Shown: positions 3,794 to 64,000 of the stretch, piece after piece
Layout: the number at the start of each line of letters is the position of its first letter
Position numbering within the stretch: the stretch's first letter is position 1
Assembly (NCBI GenBank): GCA_965644295.1
Contig: CBFFRP010000247.1
Span: forward strand, 106,194-170,193
Reading direction: 5' to 3'
DNA from: Paraphysomonas bandaiensis
Lineage: Eukaryota > Protista > Chrysophyceae
DNA length: 64,000 nt
Notes under the pieces: model-generated
The model's input: only the letters and a program-made list of their open reading frames with translations
The model's database searches: none
What the model was told of the DNA's origin: nothing
Program-made: the position numbers and the translations under genes

Positions 3794-6701
3794 ATGATTG
3801 ACGACGGGGACAGCATGCAGAAGCCCCTAGCGGCAACTCTCATTCAAGAGTTTCAGAACTTGAAAGATAAGTTTAAAGAGGACGATGAGTATGATCGAGG
3901 TGCACTATATATCCCCCATATTACCTTATTATAACACCTTTATATCCTTTAGATGCCCCTTATATGCATCTTGAGAAAGCTACTGTACTTCAAGAGTGTC
4001 GAGTGTTTCATGATGCCTCTGTTGTTACACAGAACCCACGCAGATGTTGTCTCCTCATCACTAAACTGTTGTTTCTTCTCGTAAAAGGAGATACTTTCTC
4101 ATCGTCTGAAATTACTGAGGTGTTTTTTGGGGTCACGAAGCTTTTTCAATCTTCTGATGTAAATCTTCGTCGCATGATGTATCTGTTCATCAAAGAAGTC
4201 GCGCAGACATGCAATCCGGATGACGTTATAATTGTCACCAGCTCTCTGACTAAAGATATGAACACAGGCGAAGACCTATACCGCGCTAATTCTATGAGAG
4301 TATTGGCTAAGATCATTGACGCTGCAATGTTGGGCGCGATAGAGCGATACCTTAAGCAGGCTATAGTTGACAGAAACGCTTTTGTTGCGTCATCCGCGTT
4401 GATGGCTGGGCTACAGCTCTTCCGCACCTGTCCGGATGTGGTTCGGCGCTGGATAAATGAAGTTCAAGAGGCAGTCACCTCTGTGAATGACATGGTACAG
4501 TACCATGCCCTTTCTCTGCTGTACAATATCAAGCAGCACGACCGCCTGGCTGTGTCCAAGACGGTGCAACAGCTTTCCAAGGGATCTCTTCGCTCACCCT
4601 TGGCGACGTGTTTGCTGATTCGATACACCAGTGGTCTTCTTCGAGAAGATATGAGTTCCACGAATGCGCGTAGTTCTTACCAGTTCCTCGAGAACTGTTT
4701 GAGACACAAAAGCGACATGGTCATTTACGAAGCTGCCAAAGCGATATGTAATCTACCTGGTGTAGAGGCCTCTGACCTGAACCCAGCTATTACAGTGCTG
4801 CAACTTTTTCTTTCATCTTCTAAGTCCTCTCTACGATTTGCGGCCATACGCACCCTTAGTGAGGTGGCGACTCGTCACCCGTCTAGTTTGGCGAAGTGTA
4901 ATGATGATATGGAGGGCCTGGTGGGCGACTCCAACCGGTCTATCGCCACGCTGGCCATTACCACTCTTCTCAAGACAGGCAGCGAGTCTAGCATTGAGCG
5001 ATTGATGAAACAAATTTCCTCATTCATGACAGAAATTGGGGATGAATTCAAAGTGGTTGTTGTGCAGGCTGTGCGTGAACTGTGTATCAAGTACCCAGCG
5101 AAAAACAGAGTTCTTGTGGGATTCCTTGCTACTTTCCTAAGAGAGGAGGGAGGCTTTGATTTCAAGAAGAGTATCGTGGACAGTATCCTGGACTTGATGC
5201 AGTCTATTCCAGAGACAAAGGAAACTTCGCTTCTTCATTTATGTGAATTCATTGAGGATTGTGAATTCGGTGAACTGATAGTTCAAGTCATGCATGTTCT
5301 CGGCCGAGTAGGCCCGACTACCAATGCACCATCCCGCTATATCCGATTTATTTTCAACCGCGTGATATTGGAGAATGCCGCTGTGCGTGCAGCAGCAGTG
5401 AGCACTCTCGGTTCGTTTGCTACTCGCCTTCCTGAGTTACGTCCCTCCATCATCATTCTCTTGAAGCGATCGCTCAGTGATGACGATGATGAGGTGCGTG
5501 ATCGTGCCGCGGTTCTGCTCAAGACATTCGAAGGCCGCGAAGGTGGTGATGATTCGGAGGAGAAAACAGCTAAGGAAAGCAACGCACTGCATTTTCTGTT
5601 GGAAGAGCCTTTACCTATGTCTTTCGCTGCTCTTGATCGTTCCGTTAGAGCATACATGTCCCACCCCTCTGCTGCCACAGATTCTCGACCAGTTTCCCTT
5701 TCGTTGCTGCCCATTATAGAGGACCCTTATTCTCAGACTTCTACTACCAAGGCTAGCACCTCAGGTAGGTCTATTGGTAGTGCAGTGGCAGCCAACAAGT
5801 CTGGTGGTGCAACGCAAGGGGAGACTGAAGTTAGTGCTGATCCTGCGAGTGCCCTTTACAAAATCCCTGAGCTGGCTCATCTCGGCAGAGCCTTCCGTTC
5901 CACTAAAGAGACAGCTCTTACTGAGTCTGAGATGGAGTATGTTGTCTCCTGTGTGAAACACATATTCGATACGCATGTTGTACTGCAGTTTAACGTTGTA
6001 AACACCATTGATGACCAGCGCCTTCTTGACGTTGGAGTGGCTGTGGACCTTTCTGATGAAGAGTCCTATAGTTTGGAGAGTGAGGTGCGTGCTCCTGTGG
6101 CGAAGTATGGGGATACTGCCCATTGTTACGTGTGTATTGCCCGAGCGGAGGACACAGACCCTGGGGCGTCTTGTACCGTTTCGTGCGAGCTTCGTTTCCG
6201 TGTTGTGCAGGTTGATCCGACAACAGGCGAGGTGGAGGGAGATGAAGATGGCTACGAAGAGGAGTATGCCCTTGAGGCGGTTGATATCAACACCAATGAC
6301 TTTATGGCCAAGGTTTCCTTTCCAGACTTCCGTCGATCATGGTATTACATCAGTCTATTTTTATGTGTTTTTTCGTAATCAGTTCTTGTAGGGAGCAGAT
6401 CGGTAATGATGGTGAAGTACTAGAGAAGTTTGCTCTTCAGATCAAAAAGCTCCCGGAAGCGGTGGTGGCAGTTGTGGACTTTCTGGGCATGCAGCCCTGT
6501 GATGGTACCGGATCTGTGTCCGACTCGTCTTTGAAGAGCAAGTCTCATACGCTGCATCTCACTGGCATGTTTTTGGGTAATGTCTCTGTACTGGTTCGTG
6601 CTCAACTGCAGCTCGATGACACTGCAGGTGTCGTACTCAAGATGGCAGTTAGGTCGGATAAAAAGGAAGTGAGTCAAATGGTGGCAGAATGCATTCGTTA
6701 A
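3794..6701 (+). CDS. COPG: Coatomer subunit gamma (3 exons: 3794-3899, 3953-6341, 6392-6701)
   Basis: LEKATVLQECRVFH, FFGVTKLFQS, LRRMMYLFIKE, IIVTSSLTKDM, DSNRSIATLAITTLLKTG, LCEFIEDCE, YIRFIFNRVILEN, LTESEMEYVV and FLGMQPCDGT are characteristic of gamma-COP. GT-AG introns restore the frame. Confidence 0.97.
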
Positions 6702-9354: not shown

Positions 9355-10437
9355 CTACAAATCGAGTTTCTTCAAATTGACGCTCCTTTCCAGCCACTTG
9401 ATGCCGTGATTACGAACCCTTTCGAAAAAAGACTCATATATCGGCATAATGCATCTTTTGGGCAAGTTACATAGTAACCCATTTCCAACAACGAACACAA
9501 TTTTGATTAAAATCACCACAACATTGTACATTAATGTCAGGACGAGAATAATAAACGGAGAAAATACCACATTAAAGCAGAAGAACGTGATAAGGTTTTC
9601 ATTCTCGTTATCATCATCTTCGTAACCATTGTCATCCCCCTCCTCGTCGTCATAATAAGTAAGGAGGTAATTCGCCACCAAGAACGTGCATTGCACAAGC
9701 CAAGCAGCATAAAGACCGTGTGTATATGATGTCCGAGGTATTGCTGCATGGCGGTATTTCTTACTCCATACACTCTTATATAACATAATTTTAATGTCAG
9801 CACGATGTTGCTCAAGATATCCACAGAGAAAATCCGGAATATTCTCAACCTCATGTACTTTTCCTTCTTCAGCAACGGATAATACCACATGAGCTTGATG
9901 CGTCAGTGATGCCTTCAAAAACACATTACTGTCTGATATATTCTCCTCTCGAAACGTCAGTGCACATCTCCAAACAATATTAATGGGCATTCTAACAAAG
10001 AAAAACAAAAGAATGTCAAGAAATATGTGGATAACTCCGATGACAGCACCAACAGCAGTTACAGTAACCCACGCCTGTCTGCTCACATTCGAATTCATAT
10101 ACAGCGCAAAGAAGACAATATCCAGTATCACCAGCACGCCAAAGAAACCACTGTACGTATAGTATCGGGAGGCTTGCGACCAGGCATCTAGAAACCATAC
10201 ATGATAAGGAGTGAGATAGACACTGAGTAGTTGTGGGCCCAGTGTGGTGGCGTAGATGCAGTGGTAGAGGTAGCGGGTGTGCCAGGCGTATGTAGAGTAT
10301 AGAGTTACATCTACACTAGTGTCAGTAACTCTTATACTGCTACTCACACCACCTTCGGCTTGTACTAGTGATGATGTATCCATATTTTCTATATGGAATG
10401 CATTAATAGAGCAGAGGACTGACAATGCAAGCACCAC
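9355..10437 (-). CDS. Multi-pass membrane protein of unknown function
   Basis: 360 aa intronless ORF with a hydrophobic N-terminus, about 4-5 TM-like segments and an acidic loop (DDEEGDDNGYEDDDNENE). True start uncertain. Confidence 0.55.
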   Translation of the reverse strand: MVLALSVLCSINAFHIENMDTSSLVQAEGGVSSSIRVTDTSVDVTLYSTYAWHTRYLYHCIYATTLGPQLLSVYLTPYHVWFLDAWSQASRYYTYSGFFGVLVILDIVFFALYMNSNVSRQAWVTVTAVGAVIGVIHIFLDILLFFFVRMPINIVWRCALTFREENISDSNVFLKASLTHQAHVVLSVAEEGKVHEVENIPDFLCGYLEQHRADIKIMLYKSVWSKKYRHAAIPRTSYTHGLYAAWLVQCTFLVANYLLTYYDDEEGDDNGYEDDDNENENLITFFCFNVVFSPFIILVLTLMYNVVVILIKIVFVVGNGLLCNLPKRCIMPIYESFFERVRNHGIKWLERSVNLKKLDL

Positions 10438-12569
10438 AACAGCACGACAGTAACCGTATCTTTATATCCATCTACAGTACATATAAATATATGGTAATTT
10501 TGCTGAAACTTTCCTTTTTTCTTAGAAAAGTGCAGTTTTCAGGCAATAAAAAGGGTGAAAAAGTTAATATTTGGATGAGAAATTGCTGTACGGTATCTAC
10601 GAATGTGATGCAGGAGTTGTACGATATTTCCAGGATACGTCCCTCCATTGTGCGTACTTTTGTATATTGTACTTCACTACATACTACTTGTATACAAGAG
10701 TACAGGACGTATGGTACGTGGTGGTGATTTCTCAACTGCCAGGACGATTCAAGTCTAGCGTAGACTTAGCTGAAGCTTGCATGTCACCACACAACACAAA
10801 GAATATACATTGCTAACAATCTATGCATTGCTTACAGGGTATATCGAGAGAGTGTGTGTCTGCTAGCAGACTGTAGCACATATGTTGCTCTCCATGATCA
10901 ATGGGTTGACTGTGTATATCCGTATATATGCATGAGAATGACTGTGGATCAATAATTTCACCTTCATTGTGTTCTACATATAAGCATCTTGCAATATGGA
11001 TTCGGATTTATGGAGAAGAACATGCACCAAAAGGTGCAGTACGTCATTCGTGACCATGTTGATACCGAGACTACTTTAAGGTTGTTATCCGACTATTGTT
11101 TTCTTTGGCATATTATTCATGGAAGTTGCTGCATTGATCTATTGGAATCTACTGCTAGCAACTGATTTATGGCTTTACTCCTAATATACGAATAATTTAC
11201 ATGAAGCCTGAGTGAGTGGGCTTGTGGGTGTATGAGTTATATGCAAAACGGCCCAGCCAACACTCATACATGCTGGACCTGGAGTTGCAGTATGCGATAG
11301 CTGATCGTGGAGTCTATTCCTGTCAGCGCTGTAGTAGAACACTGGGGCAAATTATCCACCCCTTTAATTCTACACGAACGAGTAGCACTGTTCTTGTATC
11401 GCCTCGTATTTTTTGATGGAGCTGCAAGAGAGGGACCTGAGGAAGACAGTAAAATATATCGGGGCTATGAATCCACAGCGCTTCCAGCGCTCACTCGTAA
11501 AGTTCGTAGAGATGTCAATGTGCGAGGACAGTGGAATCAGCAGCGTAAAAAAGTCATAGTTCATTCCTTTACCAAGGAAGGAAAGGAAAGAAGTATACCA
11601 CCTTATCCAATGCTTATCATAGATCAACTACGGAGTCTACCGCCAAATCAGTGTATGGTAAGATGTTTGCAGCATGTAATGTATTTAATTCCCAGATTTA
11701 AAATAGGATATGGCTTGATCGGCATGTTAGTGGAAGGCATCTGGGCGAAAATGGAAAGCTCGGCTGTGTATTCAAAAATACATTCAATGCGTATTCTAAT
11801 ATAAGTTCCATAGGTACAAATAGTATTGATTATTGTAGTTTCGGTATTGCGTTAGGTACTGATTTGTTCAAACATGCTGATACTCTATCTGATGAGTCTT
11901 GACGTAGAGGGATACCATGATTGGTTTACTCAGTTTTGTAATAATTGCATGTTATATCTTAAGTAACTTAGGGTTAGAGACTATGGTTTAATGTGCTTGT
12001 AGGGCTAGTGCTATGTAACAATGGCCCAAGATTGATATAACCTCATTCCCAGTTATAGTGCACTAACTAGATCTAAAGATTACTGAGTACTTGCATGGTC
12101 CATACATCATACACAATTATGAGAAATCCGACGCATATACTGGAGGGTGAAGGGGGTTAATCCAGTGCCTTTATAGTAGGCCTACCCAATACATAAATGG
12201 GCCATGTGTTTGCTACGCCACATTCGGTCACTTTCAAACCCTTTTTGATTGTATGTCAGCCGAAATAGAAGATTGCGTGGAAAAGTAGGCGAGTGCGCAT
12301 AATGTATAATTCGCGCAAAATTTCATCAATATATGTGTTGCTTGCCAAATGTCTCGGTGAGTCTACCCTGTGCTTCAGTTACTCGTAGCAATATAGTACA
12401 TTCTGGTGGTTGATATAGGTGCTTAATTACATTTTTCTTTCATATTGTGAATTATTAGATACCCCTTTGAGATAGCACAGCTAATTACCAGCCATAGGTT
12501 ACTCATCGCAACAACTGTGTTGAAAACTATAACAGTCAACCAGTGAGTGTTGTTCAATCTGTGAACTGA

Positions 12570-13544
12570 TTACGTAAGTATACGGTGAATCAGAAAACAG
12601 AAGGCTTTCTTGTCAGCCTTCGATCTCCCTCGAAAAAGATGCCAAGCTGTGGCTTCGATTATGTCAGCTTTAGAATGCTCCGCTTCATTCTCTTGAAGCA
12701 AATTCGATTTACCAAAGGAATCATACACTTCTGAGAGTTTAGTATTCGTGCAAGCATTAGTCACAGCTTTCTCGACATCGTTGGTTTTTTTGTTCACCTC
12801 ATTTATAGCACGAAGAACATAGATTAACCTGTCACCGCAAAATTTAGCGATAGAAAAGGCGCCCAACTCTGGATGCTGTCCAGTTCTGGATTCTATTGTT
12901 TTGTTTATGGCACCCTTCACATGACTGATCCCCTTTGAACTTTCCGTACCATACAGATCCCTGACGACCACATCGCATAAACTTTTCTTTGCCTTGGCCT
13001 TCTTTGCCTTTGGCTTAGCCTGTTGTATGTTGCCAGTAGAATCCGCTGGAGTTCGCAATCTACTGTCAGAAGTGGAAAGTTTTTTTTTGACTTCATCCAA
13101 GGTTAGGCAGTCGCTGCAGCGTATAGCACCCTTCAATTCGTTTTGGATATTTGGAGGCTGAAAACCTGTGTGGCTCTGAGGCCAATACACAATCACGTCT
13201 GTTGTCTTAAAAAGAGTAGTGACAGTTGAGACAAATGCATGGAACCACGTCGTCAATCGCCGAGCATTCGGATTGCATACAAGCACAATAGCCGCCTTTG
13301 TGACCTTATCTTCCTTCAAAGCATTGCTCAGTTGTCCAGTGGAGCTGCTGTGGTTCTTTGAGTCCAGTCCAACCGTATCATAATAAGTATATCCTCCGTG
13401 ACGATGCTTCTCAACACTTTCAGTTCCATCTTTGAACGGATCACTTGAGACGTTAGCAGTAGACTTACCAGTGCACTGGTTGATAAATGTGCTTTTACCT
13501 ACACCAGCAGCACCCAGAACAATTACAGCAGTGGTAGAATTCAT
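12570..13544 (-). CDS. TRAFAC (AIG1/Toc34-like) P-loop GTPase fused to a C-terminal RNase III-like domain
   Basis: G1 GAAGVGKS (aa 11-18), G2 T41, G3 DTVG (56-59), Lys-rich linker KPKAKKAKAKK. The C-terminus has AKFCGDRLI...CTNTKL...SKADIIEA, resembling RNase III motifs LEFLGD...VSNxxL...LADxxEA. GTPase call is firm; RNase III call is moderate. Confidence 0.7.
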   Translation of the reverse strand: MNSTTAVIVLGAAGVGKSTFINQCTGKSTANVSSDPFKDGTESVEKHRHGGYTYYDTVGLDSKNHSSSTGQLSNALKEDKVTKAAIVLVCNPNARRLTTWFHAFVSTVTTLFKTTDVIVYWPQSHTGFQPPNIQNELKGAIRCSDCLTLDEVKKKLSTSDSRLRTPADSTGNIQQAKPKAKKAKAKKSLCDVVVRDLYGTESSKGISHVKGAINKTIESRTGQHPELGAFSIAKFCGDRLIYVLRAINEVNKKTNDVEKAVTNACTNTKLSEVYDSFGKSNLLQENEAEHSKADIIEATAWHLFRGRSKADKKAFCFLIHRILT

Positions 13545-14033
13545 CTTGTTTAGTGTATAATCTTATTAAGTGTGTGTATGAAGGAATTGAAGGGAGTGCA
13601 TGATCGCAGGGTTGTATTGAGGTCATCGCCCACAAAAAATCCAGGCTTTTTTGATGCATGTTGTTTTTTGCGAATATATTTTAGAGAAATAACGAAAAAA
13701 GATCGATTTTTTTGATGGATCGACATATTCTGCTGCATCACAGATAGCTAACATATAGAAAAACACGTAGGATCTCAAATGTCTGGATATTCAGACACTA
13801 AGCAGATGGGAGGTGATGGGGATATATAGCCAATCATATCACCTGTAATTGTATTAACGACTTATGATTGGATAGACATGCTTGCAGGTCCCATTTCTGG
13901 ATTCACGGCATGTGTGAGCGATATGCTGCTATGCACACTGCACAATATCACTATGAAGGACATAACATATAGATATATACATGCAGGTAGATATAAAAGA
14001 CATCAGATAATATCTTCAGCAACACTAAACGAG

Positions 14034-14885
14034 ATGGAGTTTAAGGATAAAGTATGGCACACTGTACAATCCATGTATCACTACATTGAAGCTAAGAGAA
14101 CGGACAGAGATATCTTGAAGGGGCAAATAGAAGAGACTTCATTCTTCACAACTTGTAACAAACAACGAGTACAGATAAAATCAAGTATTTTGACACGAAA
14201 ATTGTGTTTTGTTAACCTGATTATACGTCATGATGTGGAACAAGTTAGACAGCAATACGACCAAGACACTGATGTAAAGGCAGTTGAATCGAAGTTTAAA
14301 GATCTTGTCTCACTTATGTGGACGGGATCTAAACAAGATAACAGCAATAATGAGTACGGAAATGATGATCTTAATGAATTATTTGAACAATGTGAAGATG
14401 CTGACAAAGCGAACCACTGGATACTATTACTGATGACTTATTATGCCAAAGTAATATTAGTACAACGAAGTCAAGATGTCGATAGGCCTCATACAGAACG
14501 AAGATTTGTAGAGAATATGACGAATATAAGGTTTGGAGAATACTCTTTGGGACATATTGCTGTGAAGGGGCAAACAGTTGGTGATATTATCCGTGAATGT
14601 AAAGTTGAGGATAAGTTTCCCCCAGGATGCACAGAGCGAAGACTTATTGGAGATGGTGCTAAGATAGAGTTAGGTACAAAATATATGCCTAAAATAAATT
14701 ATGGCGACTACAAAGCAGTTGTATATTTTCACCCGAGGATGATAAATTGTGTAAAAAGACATATTGAGTTCCATTTAGGGGAAAGTCACCTTCGAAGCTT
14801 CGGCAATTGGAAGAAGAGGGAAATTGATTCTACTGATTTAAGTGTTAAAAATGCAAAAGTAAAATATGAGACAGCAAGAGAATAA
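14034..14885 (+). CDS. Intronless orphan protein (ORF open from 13878; plausible start MEFK at 14034)
   Basis: Uninterrupted ~1 kb ORF in AT-rich DNA with globular-type composition. No motif recognised. Confidence 0.6.
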   Translation: MEFKDKVWHTVQSMYHYIEAKRTDRDILKGQIEETSFFTTCNKQRVQIKSSILTRKLCFVNLIIRHDVEQVRQQYDQDTDVKAVESKFKDLVSLMWTGSKQDNSNNEYGNDDLNELFEQCEDADKANHWILLLMTYYAKVILVQRSQDVDRPHTERRFVENMTNIRFGEYSLGHIAVKGQTVGDIIRECKVEDKFPPGCTERRLIGDGAKIELGTKYMPKINYGDYKAVVYFHPRMINCVKRHIEFHLGESHLRSFGNWKKREIDSTDLSVKNAKVKYETARE

Positions 14886-16457
14886 CGTTCTACCGACTCT
14901 TATTCTCAGTCTTTCCTTCGTTAGTTATCGTTATAATTCGATATGTCTAAATAATTGTTGTCTCATTAGTTGTTGTATTACAGTATTGATCATTTAGTCC
15001 TACGTTCTTGTCTTGATTTTGATTCACTGTGATGTAGCATATCAATGCTATAATACTGTACATTGCGACTAGCTTCAATCAATATATAATACAATATGCA
15101 CTCTAGCATGACAATATATACTGAGGAAAACTCCTGTAAAATATAAACTTATGAAATCATTACCTGTTAATGTTCCTTCATGCTTTAAATCACTACAAAA
15201 TGTATCTCTACGAGTTTTGTTTTCCTCTTTTCTATATTCCAACAATAACGCATGCTATAACAGGATATGAATAACATTAAAGCTATAAACTAGAAACAAA
15301 CATTATGATATAGGCTTGAAAACTTAAGATATATCTGTATGTTAGAAAAGATTTTGATTGTAAAATATATACCCTTAAATATACCCCAAGCTATATTGCT
15401 CCCACTTCCCCGAAAGTCATGTGTATGAGCTATGCATGCATAGAGTAAATCTAGCTGGAGATTTTAATAAGATCTATGCGTTGCATAGTTTATTCATTCT
15501 AGCACTGTACTAGATCACGCCCTCGGAATAGAGCAATTATTGTTTTCTTTTATATTATGAATTATTAGATACCCTATTCGAGTTCGTTAAGCAAATACTG
15601 ATTACAATAACTGTGTCTTGTATTTGTTTCTAGCCAAACGCACCGCCCGTAGGACCTTCACTACGACTACACTGTTGGAATGGGGCACACTCTACTATTT
15701 CTTTCTTCTTCATGCAATGAGATGTTAATTTTAGAACCTGTTAATTGCTTGAAACCTTTGAATTGATATTCTATAGCTAGACTGATATATATGACCTTTG
15801 ATAAATAGATTTGACGGGAATAAAGACGAGTGTCAATTTGCGGCTTCATAACTGCGGAAATCGATGCACCTTAATTAACTTTTGTTGATATAATTACGAT
15901 ATATACGGTAAGAGTATTTTACCAGATCCAACACTATTTTCTGGTCATGCTCACCGTTAACGCAATACGTCAGAAGCGACATGATATCATATGCCTTACT
16001 ACATTGGAGATATAGTATAGCTTTTTAAAATGTTATTACTTTTGCTTATGTTTGTAGAATTTCACCGTCTTCGTTCCATGTTCTACTTCGTACGATTCAC
16101 ATAATGAATGCTGTTTGGCATTTGTTCTTCAGGTGCTTTCCCTAATTGATAAGCGTGAATATGTTCCCAGTACTCTCCCAGACAACGACAGTTCCCATCT
16201 TGAAGGCTCTATACAAGATTAGAAATTAGTATGATAAAATCCTATTAGTAAGAGGGCTGTGTAACAAGTAATTATGAATAATTAATTAATTATTAAGGAA
16301 TATTGTTCTTGCGTTCTTGCTAAACTCATGCAGCAATATCCTATACCGCCGACAAAAACTGGGTAACTCATCACGTACGAGCACAACAATAGTATTCAAA
16401 TAATTAGTATTATTAGGTTTATTGAACGACGTGTGCACTATTTCTACTACGCGTGAT

Positions 16458-18309
16458 TCACGCATTCTCATCGTCGACATTGATATCCTCCAGAATGTCA
16501 TCCAGACATAGTATTTCGCTACCTCTCGCAGAATCCCTACCAGGTTCTGGAACTGTTGAAGACACAGTGGTCATTTCAGTCTCGGAGAGGACGCCTACAT
16601 CACTGTCAGTAGGACGACTTACACCTGTGGAGGGGTTGCTATCATCGCCACGCAAAGGGCCAGCAGCAGTTTGACTAGAAGAAATTGACCTCGGATCCAT
16701 ATTCATAGCCTCCACTTGTCCACTGGTCTGCTCCTGACCAGAAGGTCTACTGGAAGCACTAGAGACTGGAGCATTAACCTGAGAGGTAGTAGTGGCTCCA
16801 GAGTGCTGCTGCTGTGGATGTGGGGCGAAATGTCGAACTACTACGTGCCTTCCCCCCCCCCTACCCTGGCGAACCATTATTCTTCCCCCCCCCCAACCCT
16901 GGCGAATCATTGTTGTTCCACCTCTCACGACATTAGCACCATGCTGATCATGCATAGGCTGCTGCTGGGGGTGCATCATATTCGGTACAGTATTGGTAGG
17001 GTGATTCAAGGACGATGTTTGTGCCCACGCTGTCTGAGTGGTAGAAGGGGGAGAAGGCCTTCCTGTTAAAGCTGGACAAAATACTTCCTGTGCATTGATA
17101 CCACGAACACTGTTAGCAAGATGCCCACACGCAGCTGACATATGGCTCAGCATGGCAGATATGTTCAGCGCTTGAGTTTGTGCAGACACCACTTCATGAG
17201 GTTCAATAGTATTAACACCAGTCGAACGATTTTCTGTGAAGTACACAGTGAATACTTAGCTTCAAACAATACCAGTGGGGACATACAGTCCACAAACACA
17301 TACACCATATCACTTGCAACATGTAAAACAGTAACAAGACAAGAGTCTCACCATGGGCTTGTTGAAGGTTCCCAACAAGTGGTTGCAGTGCTTCATTCAC
17401 ATCAGACATAGCACGCTGTAGTGTCGCCAATGACAAAGCCAGACTCTGCGTAGAATTTTCATAGGGGTTGTGCTGTTGCTGCTGATATGCTGCTCCTGGT
17501 AATAGACTGGATAAAGCATGCAGGTGAGATGTCCCCATCACAATATCATTAGATGCAGACATTTCGGTGGATCCTCCTGTATGTGCGGTGTGATGGGTGT
17601 GGTGTACACGTACTCGATGCTGTGGCTGTGTGTGCAGGTATTGTGGTTGCGGCTGAGGTTGTCCTTGTGGTGGTGGCATCTGAGTATGTGACTGCTGTGG
17701 CTGTGCTGGAACACTAGAATCAATGGTAGGGCCAGATTGTGGCATGCTGTTGCTTTCCATTGGACTGGTACTATTTGAACCACTATTAGCCCCAGTATCA
17801 GACTCGTTGGCATCGTTCGCTCCACTCGGCTGAGGTGGAGGTGGTTGGCTTTGGGGAGAGAGTCCTTGTTGAGCAACAGACATCATTTGATTCACGATTG
17901 CTTGAATTTCAGGAGGCATTCCATTAGATCCCACTTCTGAACTATCGATTGTCATAGAACCAACCATCACACCATTTCCCAGAGTCTGTACGTGCACGCC
18001 GCGTGGTAGAGGTGCAGGCATTGCCGGAGGTGTAGTTTGTGAAGTAGTTGAAGGTGGGGTAGGATTAGAAGCCGGAACATTATCAGGTCGTATTACAATA
18101 TGCACAACAGAATCTTCTGTTATTGAATAATCACTCAGTGTTTGATTGTCTTTAAGGACACGGCCGCAATATATGAGTCTCTGTCTGTCGACAGCCACGT
18201 CTATAGCACTCAACACCTTCGCTTTCACTGCCGATATCTTCGTATCCACCCCATCAAATAGATCGACTGTAAACATTTCTCCATCCATTTTCTTTACTTT
18301 CAATAACAT
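16458..18309 (-). CDS. N-terminal ubiquitin-like domain protein (BAG6/Scythe-like architecture), one intron at ~17233-17352
   Basis: MLLKVKKMDGEMFTV...VKAKV...DRQRLIYCGRVLKDNQTLSDYSITEDSVVHIVIR is a UBL domain, followed by a long P/Q/S/H low-complexity region and GRGGGR repeats. Confidence 0.8.
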
Positions 18310-18799
18310 CTTCACAGTAATGTATGTGTATGTATGTGTGTATGTGTATGTGTGTGTGTATGTGTGTGTGTGTGTGTATGCTAGCAGGAGACGCTCTGTA
18401 TGTTCTATCAGCCTACTGTGAGTGGGACAGAACACTGACAACCTTTAGATGTATAGCTAGTGAGATCTATCAATAGATGGAGTTCAGTTCACTTGATATG
18501 AGGGTCATACGACACTGATAGTATAGTCAACTGGGCTGTATATACACACATACATACATACATACATACATACACTGACTGCTGTATCATACCTTCCATA
18601 ATTCTTCCATTATATTATTGCTAGAAACCCTTAATTTTAGTATTAGAAACATAGAGTTTGGATATATATCTAGAGGTTTTCGAGAAATTGGAATATTTTT
18701 CTGGGGTTTTATCTTCTACTAAACTCCCCATTCGTCCGGGAGAGATCCGTTTAAGTTTGGAACAGATATCCAACCAACCCGTCCCTCCTATAATGACCA

Positions 18800-61305: not shown

Positions 61306-61336
61306 TGGGCTTGGAGCTGGTTAATAGGGTGAAACT

Positions 61337-61556
61337 TTATATGATGTGGAACACGAGGATGATGATGCTAAGTGGCCGACGACACCTTTACAATGGAGAG
61401 CGGAACAGATGAGAGATGAACAGTTAAGGGAATGGGACAAAGAGATAAAAGAAGGAGAAGTTAAAGAAGTAGAAAAAGGTTTGGTCATAAGCAAGCGCGA
61501 TATGGGTGAAGGAGTATATGGGATCCATAGACGATGGACACCTGCTGGAAGGACTA
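61337..61556 (+). repeat. 220-bp direct duplicate of 58755-58974
   Basis: ttatatgatgtggaacacgagg...cctgctggaaggacta appears identical in both places. Confidence 0.92.
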
Positions 61557-64000
61557 ATTCGTCATCTTCATTACACAGGTGACATAGCCCTTCCGCTGTA
61601 TGACAATCTTCATACTCGTCCTCTTCAGCAACACATAGATGGAGTCTGGAGAGTGTATCGGCCAGTACATTTTCTTTTCCAGGGATGTGTCTCACCTTAA
61701 ACACAAATGACTGCAGGTAAATTCTCCATCGTATAATTTTGGGTACTTCTGACGCTTCTATCCATCTCAGGTTGTTATGATCCGTCTCCAACAAAAACTC
61801 CTTCCCAATTAGATAGTAAGCCAGTCGTTTGACCACATAATAGATTGCAAAGCCCTCCTGCTCAATAGTGTCCCACTTCTGTGCTTGCTTTGAGAATCTT
61901 TTGGAGATCAGCGCTATAATTTGCTCTTCCTTTGAACCATCTGCATGTGTCTTGATTTGAATGAGAACTCCGCCAACACCTATCTCACTCACATCAGTTC
62001 TTATCACCCATGGTAGCTCGTAATCTGGGTAATGAAGTGCACATGCCTCTTGCAAATCCCTCTTGAAATCTTCGAATTCCTGTCTGTAGTCGTGCTCCCA
62101 CTTTGACTCATCTGACCAGTCGAATTCAGGTTTCGTAAGATCCGTCAAATGTCTAATTTTCTCACTGTAATTTTTCACAAAAGGTGCAAAGAAAACTCCA
62201 CATCCTAATAATGATCTGATTTTCTTGGATCTGTTCCCGGATTCTGGAAAAGGTATCTCAAGTAATGCAGCCTTTCTATCCTCTGTCAACTCAAAGCTCT
62301 GGTGCTTACATCTATAGCCAAAGAACTTGACTTCTCCAAAACCTAGCCAGCTCTTTGCAAACTTGAGAATAACATTGTGTTGTATGCATCTCTCGATGAA
62401 GATTTTCAGTCTCTCGTATGCCTCTTGGTAATTCATCGCCAGAAGCAAAATGTTGTCGAATATCACTATGGCCCACGGTAAGCCTGAAAACAATGCATTG
62501 ACAGTCTCTTGTAAAACTTCAGTAGCAGGACCTATTCCCTCAGGCATGAATCGTGGTTGATATTGACCCCAAGGAGTTTGAATGGATAGCTTCTCCGCCG
62601 TCTCTTCATGCAATGGGATTTGGTGGAAGGTGTTTGTGAGATCTATGTCTAAAAATACCTTGTATCCCATGATACGATCTAACTGGTGCCTAATATTAGG
62701 TATAGTGTAGTTACCGATGTGAATATGCCTGTTGATCTCTACGTAATCACCACAGAACCTGATGAACGGCTTCGTAGCCTTGGGAGCCACAACCAAGCAA
62801 GACGCCCATGGAGATCTACTCCTCTCGTACATGTACCCACGCAGTCTCAAAAATTCCTTTTCTGCCGCCTCCCAGAGTCTTGGGTTTATGGGTCTGGCTT
62901 TGGGCTTGAGTCGCTGAGGTAAAGTGTCTTTGAAGGTGAGTTTTAATGGTTCAACACCTCTGATACCAGTCCATGTCTCTGGTACGAAAACCTTCAAACC
63001 TTCATTTAGTAACAGTTCTCGAACAGGTGTTGCTTTGTCAAAATCTTCAGCTATATGCTCGGGCATCTAATCCTTGAATTCCTGAATGGCTTCTTCTCTG
63101 TTTTTTCCCAAAAACGTGATCACCTCACCAAACTGCACTGGCAACGGAGACATTTCTTCTTCCAGTGGCTCTCCCTCCATACTATTTGACCAGGGATACA
63201 CTATGTTGTCCATTGATGCCAAGAACTGCAACATCTCCTCCTCCGCATCTGCCACGCTCGTTCTAATCCTTCTTTCTGCATTACCTTTTAGACTGTAGCA
63301 AAAGAAGTCCCACAAGTCCCCTAGTATCGCAGGTAACCCAATTATGATCTCATTATCTTTCATGTCCAACACAATAAATTCTCCAGAGTATTCGCATGAA
63401 ACCGCGCTCAGTGAACGATCCTCGAACTTCAAGGTAAGCCTCACCATGATGTCACTCCATGCCACTGTCTTATTGTCTGCTAATCCGACTTTTGTTCTCT
63501 TGTGTATTATGTCCTTAGTATGCATGTGTTTCTCGATATCTCTAAATTTCTTTATGCTGATGTAGTTCGAACAGAGGGCTCCTGTGTCGAACAGTACAGT
63601 TGTCTCTACTCCATTTTCATTACTCAACTCTTTCTCCTGGCTATCTACTACTCCGATTGTTGCTTTTGTGTGAGCGGCTGTCCATAGTCTCCTGCCTACG
63701 CCGCATGCCTGCAGGAAACTTCGCTCCAGGGCCTTTCTGCAAGCCTTCCTACTGTGTGAAAACCTTTCATCTTCAACAGCAGGTGCCCCAGAAAGACCCT
63801 GCAGTAGTCAAGATTTCGTTGGATCACGCTTCATTATCTTAGGAGGTCCCGGACCATCTCTTTCCATCGTCGCCAACTTCTTCATCATCCACTGTCTGCA
63901 GTCCCTTGCACACTTCTCATTGTGACTTCCGGCATATTTACACTGGTCTCCTCGAAAGCACTTCTCATACAAGGCGAAATTGACACATCCCAACCCGGTA
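61557..64000 (-). mobile_element. Ty3/gypsy LTR retrotransposon fragment: gag-end CCCH finger, protease, RT, RNase H (disrupted; continues beyond window)
   Basis: CVNFALYEKCFRGDQCKYAGSH; VLFDTGA; SPWASCLVVAPK..RFCGDY..IN..IDLTNTFHQIPL..TPWGQY..MPEG..IFDN; RTDVSEIGVGGVL..EQEGFAI..ETDHNNL..HIPGKENVLADTLSR. In-frame TAG at 63067-63069; integrase missing. Confidence 0.92.

Follow-up and report, generated by a model that had tools for sequence, protein, structure and literature searches.

An AIG1-like GTPase joined to an RNase III-fold domain in the chrysophyte Paraphysomonas bandaiensis and other microbial eukaryotes

What might a protein do that carries a GTPase domain at one end and an RNase III-like domain at the other? 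This question is raised by a single gene in a 64,000-nucleotide stretch of the Paraphysomonas bandaiensis genome (assembly GCA_965644295.1, contig CBFFRP010000247.1, positions 106,194 to 170,193 of the forward strand; hereafter the window), for which a first-pass annotation, made from the letters alone, had proposed an AIG1-like GTPase fused to an RNase III-like nuclease domain. The coding sequence is intron-free and lies on the minus strand at 12570..13544 (324 aa plus stop), with an ATG start and its stop codon at 12570-12572; the open frame of 330 aa leaves at most 6 further in-frame codons 5' of the ATG before a stop. This reading comes from the list of open reading frames (ORFs), a residue-to-codon check, in which every motif named beforehand was found at its given residue, and a 100% self-match without internal stops. 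Profile and fold evidence supported the proposed architecture, a GTPase half, a basic linker and an RNase III-like half. We tentatively favour as the best explanation a GTP-gated RNase III-like nuclease for structured or double-stranded RNA (dsRNA) with a role in conflict or immunity, an explanation that we hold with slightly less than even confidence.

The C-terminal domain spans residues 209-324 (12573..12920, minus strand) and was defined by a family profile compared with PDB, an AlphaFold2 (AF2) model, fold searches and residue conservation. Taken alone, these residues of the window protein matched no Pfam family, so that the RNase III assignment rests on the family profile and the predicted fold. 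The profile of 26 C-terminal domains matched Drosha (E = 1e-7) and the endonuclease domain of Aquifex RNase III (E = 4e-6), the latter over the whole domain (profile positions 3-119 versus chain residues 19-136). All of its significant PDB matches (E up to 0.001) were RNase III proteins, including Dicers and the Giardia Dicer, and at E up to 10 the RNase III family accounted for 36 of 37 chains, with RNase III structures at about 1e-7 to 1e-5. We also found that seven of the 26 relatives individually matched the Pfam RNase III family (PF00636) at E up to 10, the four of these that were listed lying between 1.5e-5 and 0.055.

The predicted fold pointed in the same direction. An AF2 model of the domain, made without templates, reached a predicted local distance difference test (pLDDT) score of 92.8 and a predicted template-modelling score (pTM) of 0.87, and nearly all of its top Foldseek matches were RNase III folds (TM-score 0.55-0.65; E values weak, 5e-3 or worse). 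In the VIA searches, the second search gave Z scores of 10-10.8 over domain residues 1-116, and the exhaustive one (48,161 chains) placed RNase III folds at all of ranks 1-31 (Z 10.8 to 5.9), followed by the next match at Z 3.9; these 31 included Mini-III, a Trypanosoma brucei editing-complex subunit, mitoribosomal RNase III-like proteins, Entamoeba RNase III, Giardia Dicer and E. coli RNase III. The ESM Atlas likewise returned RNase III families in 10 of 10 rows (TM-score 0.61-0.75). The first-pass annotation had allowed that the C-terminus might fail to model as an RNase III fold; AF2, Foldseek, VIA and the ESM Atlas instead agreed on that fold, and we regard the assignment of the predicted structure as secure.

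At the other end, residues 1-165 (13050..13544, minus strand) make up an AIG1/GIMAP/Toc-like TRAFAC GTPase domain, identified by a Pfam match, Foldseek, the ESM Atlas and family conservation. The window protein scored 36 bits with MMR_HSR1 (PF01926), whose cut-off is 21.9 (E = 8.3e-9), which places the GTPase similarity beyond chance. The ORF translation contains the P-loop G1 GAAGVGKS at residues 11-18 (13491-13514), the G2 residue Thr41 (13422-13424) and the G3 motif D56-T-V-G59 (13368-13379), and alignment to GIMAP7 adds a conserved-box arginine, Arg96 (13257-13259), all on the minus strand. Among the 26 family members G1, G2 and G3 were near-invariant, position 96 held 24 Arg and 2 Lys, and T98 and W121 were each kept in 23. 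By definition, an AIG1 domain combines G1-G4, G5/IAN and a conserved box (PMC7053062). The full-length AF2 model had a mean pLDDT of 84.8; Foldseek matched its GTPase half best to GIMAP7 (3zjc), Toc34, Toc33 and GIMAP2 (E = 4e-6 to 1e-4), and AIG1 clusters were the closest models in the ESM Atlas. With a profile of the segment from G3 to beta6, GIMAP7 was the top PDB match at a weak E value of 0.09, the family's VLV...RxT falling on IVLVLQLGRYT of GIMAP7 and R96 on the arginine of GRYT. The 'L100Q' label of the GIMAP7 PDB entry numbers this arginine 103, which we take to be the catalytic finger. According to a secondary source (PMC8066113), GIMAP7 relies on dimerisation and a catalytic arginine finger to activate GTP hydrolysis. 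Pfam AIG1 (PF04548) was not matched by the window protein at E up to 10, and was matched by six of nine relatives at E up to 1 (best 7.5e-5). The earlier label 'AIG1-like' is therefore a fair one, backed by the fold and the conserved-box arginine, while membership of the AIG1 family is not proven.

Between the two domains runs a basic, low-complexity and disordered linker (residues 166-208; 12921..13049, minus strand), which includes KPKAKKAKAKK at residues 177-187 and has pLDDT below 50 at residues 168-186 of the AF2 model. The linker was net basic in 25 of 26 family members, and two of them carry KKKRKK and KKKKRK, respectively, which to our reading look like classical nuclear localisation signals. 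The window protein contains no dsRNA-binding domain (dsRBD). Organelle targeting was considered and rejected, because the P-loop strand, which begins at residue 5, leaves no room for an N-terminal presequence. The gene product is a two-domain cytosolic or nuclear protein.

We then compared the putative active site with that of Aquifex RNase III, in which two Mg2+ ions are held by E40, D44, D107 and E110 (PMC3867540). The corresponding residues of the window protein are K234 (12843-12845), D238 (12831-12833), D294 (12663-12665) and E297 (12654-12656), all on the minus strand, and in the HMMER alignment the family's '...k-f-l-G-D' falls on 'E-F-L-G-D' and its 'K-A-D-v-v-E-A' on 'G-D-V-F-E-A'. 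Among the 26 members, proteins only about 20% identical overall, D238 was kept in 25, D294 in 22 (otherwise three Asn and one Thr), E297 in 24 and G237 in 25, so the earlier worry that the acidic residues might not be conserved in homologues was not borne out. H290 (21/26) and K292 (23/26) are extra residues conserved specifically in this family. P0001, the closest relative from outside this genome, retains an intact ORF but no longer has G237, D294 or E297, which indicates that the active site can decay in some lineages. Residue conservation thus speaks for a site that is clearly under selection yet non-canonical. Perhaps the catalytic centre has been remodelled, Lys or His making up for one carboxylate or metal; alternatively, the domain may not cut and the site may bind a ligand.

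An exhaustive search of representative sequences recovered about 25 sequence clusters of 320-390 aa with the same GTPase-linker-RNase III layout in microbial eukaryotes. One relative comes from the chrysophyte Ochromonadaceae sp. CCMP2298 (KAJ1412498.1, annotated 'hypothetical protein', which also has an MMETSP listing with a transcript id), and others come from EukProt and from marine and other metagenomes. The databases name the homologues 'predicted GTPase', 'SAR1 family' or, wrongly, 'EcfA2', and none carried an RNase III domain annotation. Their contigs are eukaryotic nuclear DNA with split SNF2, CD36, LRR, Rpb2, Tim17 and cofilin genes, and in every case one exon holds the whole family gene. 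L009, a metagenome contig of eukaryotic DNA, carries two family paralogues in tandem (P0025 and P0037, at 10001-11143 and 12072-13196). In CCMP2298 (contig L013), KAJ1412498.1 (752-1690) has no P-loop; some 50 nt farther upstream a different frame encodes one (624-701), and the short contig L014 has the same sequence and the same out-of-frame P-loop. Possible causes are a small intron, a frameshift and a start called in the wrong place. Word-indexed searching of 5.8 billion proteins with the window protein found only P0001 and no close orthologue, and the same kind of search with an alignment (A2) added nothing, P-loop words dominating.

The same genome holds a second copy of the gene at locus G000:C169, with 66% protein identity, making two copies in total. 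The ratio of nonsynonymous to synonymous substitution (dN/dS) between these paralogues was 0.59 for the whole protein, 0.59 for the GTPase, 1.37 for the linker and 0.41 for the RNase III-like domain, which indicates that both domains are constrained and the gene is fast-evolving. Taken together, the family is small, fast-evolving, intron-free and distributed in microbial eukaryotes. The genome also encodes a canonical Dicer-like gene, whose open frame of 1695 aa includes two PF00636 domains, as well as another RNase III gene (G000:C377:216520-217656 and G000:C451:113360-113605); the fusion protein therefore adds to the standard RNase III set and does not replace it. Full-text literature searches turned up no description of a GTPase-RNase III fusion, and the surveys of AIG/GIMAP architectures found there made no mention of RNase, in keeping with the initial impression that no protein of this architecture had been described. 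The architecture is thus apparently undescribed; RNase III and AIG1-like GTPases are each known kinds.

Assembled contigs from sequencing runs point to transcription. In one run (X1), an exact, ungapped contig of 1120 nt, a probable mRNA on the gene's strand (minus; the contigs themselves carry no strand information), covers 12461..13580, colinear with the entire coding sequence plus 36 nt upstream and 109 nt downstream. Exact pieces from two further runs (X2 and X3) were confined to 12461-13580, with none in the flanks at 12300-12449 or 14900-15700. For runs X1-X3 the label 'RNA' was guessed, and X2 bears a flag as probable DNA; their coverage bounds are probably the pattern of a transcribed sequence. 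A run labelled as a polyA metatranscriptome (X4) gave an exact 161-nt contig at 12784-12944, within the RNase III-like domain, and the homologue P0023 has an MMETSP listing with a transcript id, which we counted as support for expression. The first-pass annotation had left room for there being no transcript across both domains; the single colinear X1 contig, whose RNA label is itself a guess, spans the two.

Upstream of the gene lies a divergent orphan neighbour, a 283-aa ORF on the plus strand (14034..14885), which is duplicated together with the GTPase-RNase III gene and whose functional link to it is unproven. The pair recurs as a block at G000:C169 with 75-76% nucleotide identity and 66% protein identity for the neighbour, and the neighbour is partly covered by RNA-type contigs, one of them from a polyA metatranscriptome. 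It had no homologue in Pfam, the atlas or the databases, and no copy of it stood beside the family homologues on ten other contigs (L005-L014), and on these grounds we do not regard it as a conserved partner. The 3.1-kb two-gene unit is bracketed by two copies of a 40-bp direct repeat (12425-12464 and 15535-15574; 88% identical to each other), and the probable mRNA 3' end (12450-12461) lies inside the left copy. This repeat also flanks the paralogous locus on either side (G000:C169:211030-211130 and 214144-214284); across the two loci the repeat is 40-140 bp long, and it was found nowhere else in the genome. The promoter region shared by the two divergent genes contains a high-copy element of about 106 bp (13634-13739), with at least 40 genome copies at 93-96% identity, many with an adjoining inverted 45-bp match in the manner of a terminal inverted repeat (TIR) or a miniature inverted-repeat transposable element (MITE), and with a depth spike above 100 in runs mapped to the window.

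Elsewhere in the window we found a coatomer gamma subunit (3964-6378, plus strand), a ubiquitin-domain protein (17212-18441, minus strand) and an LTR-retrotransposon ORF with reverse transcriptase and RNase H (61321-63066, minus strand). The surroundings are ordinary eukaryotic nuclear DNA with transposons. A prokaryotic or contaminant origin was rejected in view of the coatomer gamma gene and the LTR retrotransposon in the window and by the eukaryotic contigs of the homologues.

Several known systems resemble parts of this protein. Mini-III (bacterial and chloroplast, e.g., B. subtilis 4oun) is also a single RNase III domain without a dsRBD and ranked first among the structural matches (Z 10.8 over 96 aligned residues); it is, however, a protein of about 130 aa that stands alone and has no NTPase, whereas the window protein is fused to a GTPase, has Lys in place of the first metal-binding Glu and is only about 10% identical to it. 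Since Mini-III is active without a dsRBD, this domain is not needed for RNase III catalysis (PMC3867540). GIMAP, AIG1 and Toc34 proteins (human GIMAP7 and GIMAP2, pea Toc34) provide the best fold match for the G domain, with the arginine of the conserved box hhLV...RxT aligned, but known GIMAPs have coiled-coil or transmembrane tails, or death, kinase or Hint domains, and no nuclease, and the window protein lacks G4 and a Pfam AIG1 match. AIG genes have been described as patchily distributed and prone to expansion (PMC7053062), and the GTPase-RNase III family resembles them in this. Dicer, too, combines an NTPase with RNase III-fold nuclease domains in one polypeptide, but it has an SF2 helicase, a PAZ domain, two RNase III domains that form an intramolecular dimer and the full acidic set, in contrast to the one RNase III-like domain, the GTPase and the absence of PAZ and dsRBD seen here. 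Dicer is the standard eukaryotic dsRNA nuclease against viruses and transposons.

The bacterial rnc-era operon pairs RNase III with the Era GTPase, so that a TRAFAC GTPase is functionally paired with RNase III there as well; unlike the fusion, the two are separate proteins, and Era has a KH domain and a housekeeping role in rRNA, whereas the G domain of the window protein is GIMAP-like by fold. The RNase III-like subunits of mitoribosomes, the editing-complex partners of T. brucei and Mucor R3B2 share the fold (Z 7-10.7) and are non-catalytic, with incomplete catalytic sets. The GTPase-RNase III family differs from them in keeping three of the four carboxylates under clear constraint and in its GTPase fusion.

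On the nuclease reading, the RNase III-like domains would pair as in every known RNase III and form an RNA-binding valley, with metal held at each site by D238, D294 and E297 and with the family-conserved Lys234, His290 and Lys292 replacing the missing fourth carboxylate in a variation on the canonical two-Mg2+ mechanism. The basic linker would help to hold RNA instead of a dsRBD and may double as a nuclear localisation signal. GTP-bound GIMAP-like G domains would dimerise, with Arg96 as an arginine finger in trans, and this dimerisation would open or close the valley, giving a nucleotide-gated nuclease for structured or double-stranded RNA. A role in conflict or immunity against viral or transposon RNA, rather than in housekeeping, is suggested by the patchy distribution, lineage-specific duplication and high dN/dS; we counted toward conflict-like evolution the two copies in this genome, the tandem paralogues on L009, the absence of a close orthologue and the loss of D294 and E297 in P0001. 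An ambitious extension would make the protein the founder of a new class of RNase III enzyme, in which a GIMAP-type, dimerisation-activated GTPase gates a Lys-remodelled site to give a Dicer-independent nuclease against viral or transposon dsRNA in stramenopile algae and other protists; this we consider unlikely.

Several observations weigh against a gated nuclease. The position of Aquifex E40 (E. coli E41) was never Asp or Glu in the family (17 Lys, 5 Ala, 2 His, 1 Cys and 1 Arg), and in a deep mutational scan E. coli RNase III tolerated no mutation at E41, D45 or E117, D114 being tolerant (PMC10037077), which together make canonical catalysis doubtful. The first-pass annotation was thus right that three of the four acidic positions are kept and that the first Glu is Lys234, but the missing Glu counts more heavily against nuclease activity than it had allowed. 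In the GTPase half, comparison with GIMAP7 bore out both its assignment of G1, G2 and G3 and its failure to find a canonical G4: the window protein has VYWPQS in place of LFTRKEE, so that guanine specificity is only putative; the G4 region of many relatives keeps W-T/S, in some with an Asp after it. The best family member scored 26.2 bits against PF00636 with a cut-off of 27, and none reached that cut-off, as a result of which the architecture would escape domain databases and remain unannotated. A search of viral contigs (IMG/VR) with the protein and with an alignment (A1) found no relative; its sensitivity was low, and giant-virus homologues may still exist. We list here as well a complex prediction for two copies of the RNase III-like domain, although it is evidence for neither side, having given no answer (score 0.00, alignment unused, fold uncertain).

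The main rival is a non-catalytic RNase III-like module: a domain that no longer cuts and serves as a constitutive dimerisation and/or RNA-binding module joining two GIMAP-like G domains, with GTPase-driven scaffolding or RNA binding as the output. We hold it to be doubtful, and still a serious contender. The never-acidic E40/E41 equivalent, at a position intolerant to change in E. coli, fits this rival, as do the yeast and human mitoribosomal subunits and the T. brucei RECC1 chain (all non-catalytic) among the top structural neighbours, the intact ORF of P0001 without D294 and E297, and the activation of AIG1/Toc GTPases by dimerisation. A mere scaffold, however, would not be expected to keep D238, D294, E297, H290 and K292 in very divergent members, and the RNase III-like domain has the lowest dN/dS in the protein. 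A coincidental likeness, in which the C-terminus would be just another helical bundle, is very improbable indeed. The missing Pfam match of the window C-terminus, the weak Foldseek E values and the fact that a Z of about 10 alone is unremarkable among helical domains could be read in its favour, but the significant profile matches, which are exclusively to RNase III, reach an E value of 1e-7 and keep the signature residues in register, seven relatives match PF00636 on their own, and 31 RNase III folds precede the gap to Z 3.9 in the exhaustive fold search.

A housekeeping factor for rRNA or ribosome assembly, as a eukaryotic fusion counterpart of the rnc-era pairing or of Mini-III acting on pre-rRNA, seems to us improbable. 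Such a role would suit the NCBIfam and PDB sequence matches of the G domain, which include Der/EngA, Era and YlqF, the rank of Mini-III as top structural match and a basic linker that could be a nuclear or nucleolar signal. It sits poorly with a very patchy distribution without conserved orthologues, with dN/dS values of 0.4-0.6 and lineage-specific paralogues, with the decayed active site of P0001, with the missing organelle presequence, with the canonical RNase III genes already in the genome and with a G-domain fold nearest to GIMAP and Toc, not Era. Marginally less probable again is a selfish or toxin-antidote-like cassette, in which the fusion protein and the divergent orphan are copied as a unit and the neighbour acts as inhibitor or partner. 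Both genes were duplicated together, share a promoter region and are covered by RNA-type contigs, and the direct repeat that flanks both loci is unique to them in the genome; on the other side, there are two copies only, the neighbour lacks a homologue anywhere and is absent beside homologues in other organisms, and no transposase or integrase lies within the two-gene unit.

These findings bear on both protein families. RNase III architectures comprise bacterial RNase III, Mini-III, the Rnt1 type, Drosha and Dicer, to which the fusion would add one that is coupled to a GTPase. In plants and animals GIMAP/AIG1 GTPases have been linked to immunity, but to our knowledge none has clearly been credited with a direct effector activity; the fusion would give a GIMAP-like protein with a directly readable output, cleavage or binding of RNA, so that the switch mechanism becomes testable. 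Why a Lys should be conserved where the catalytic Glu otherwise tolerates no change is a clear question of enzyme mechanism. Diatoms and related algae are heavily infected by RNA viruses, and the gene would be a candidate for innate defence in these organisms that current annotation has missed.

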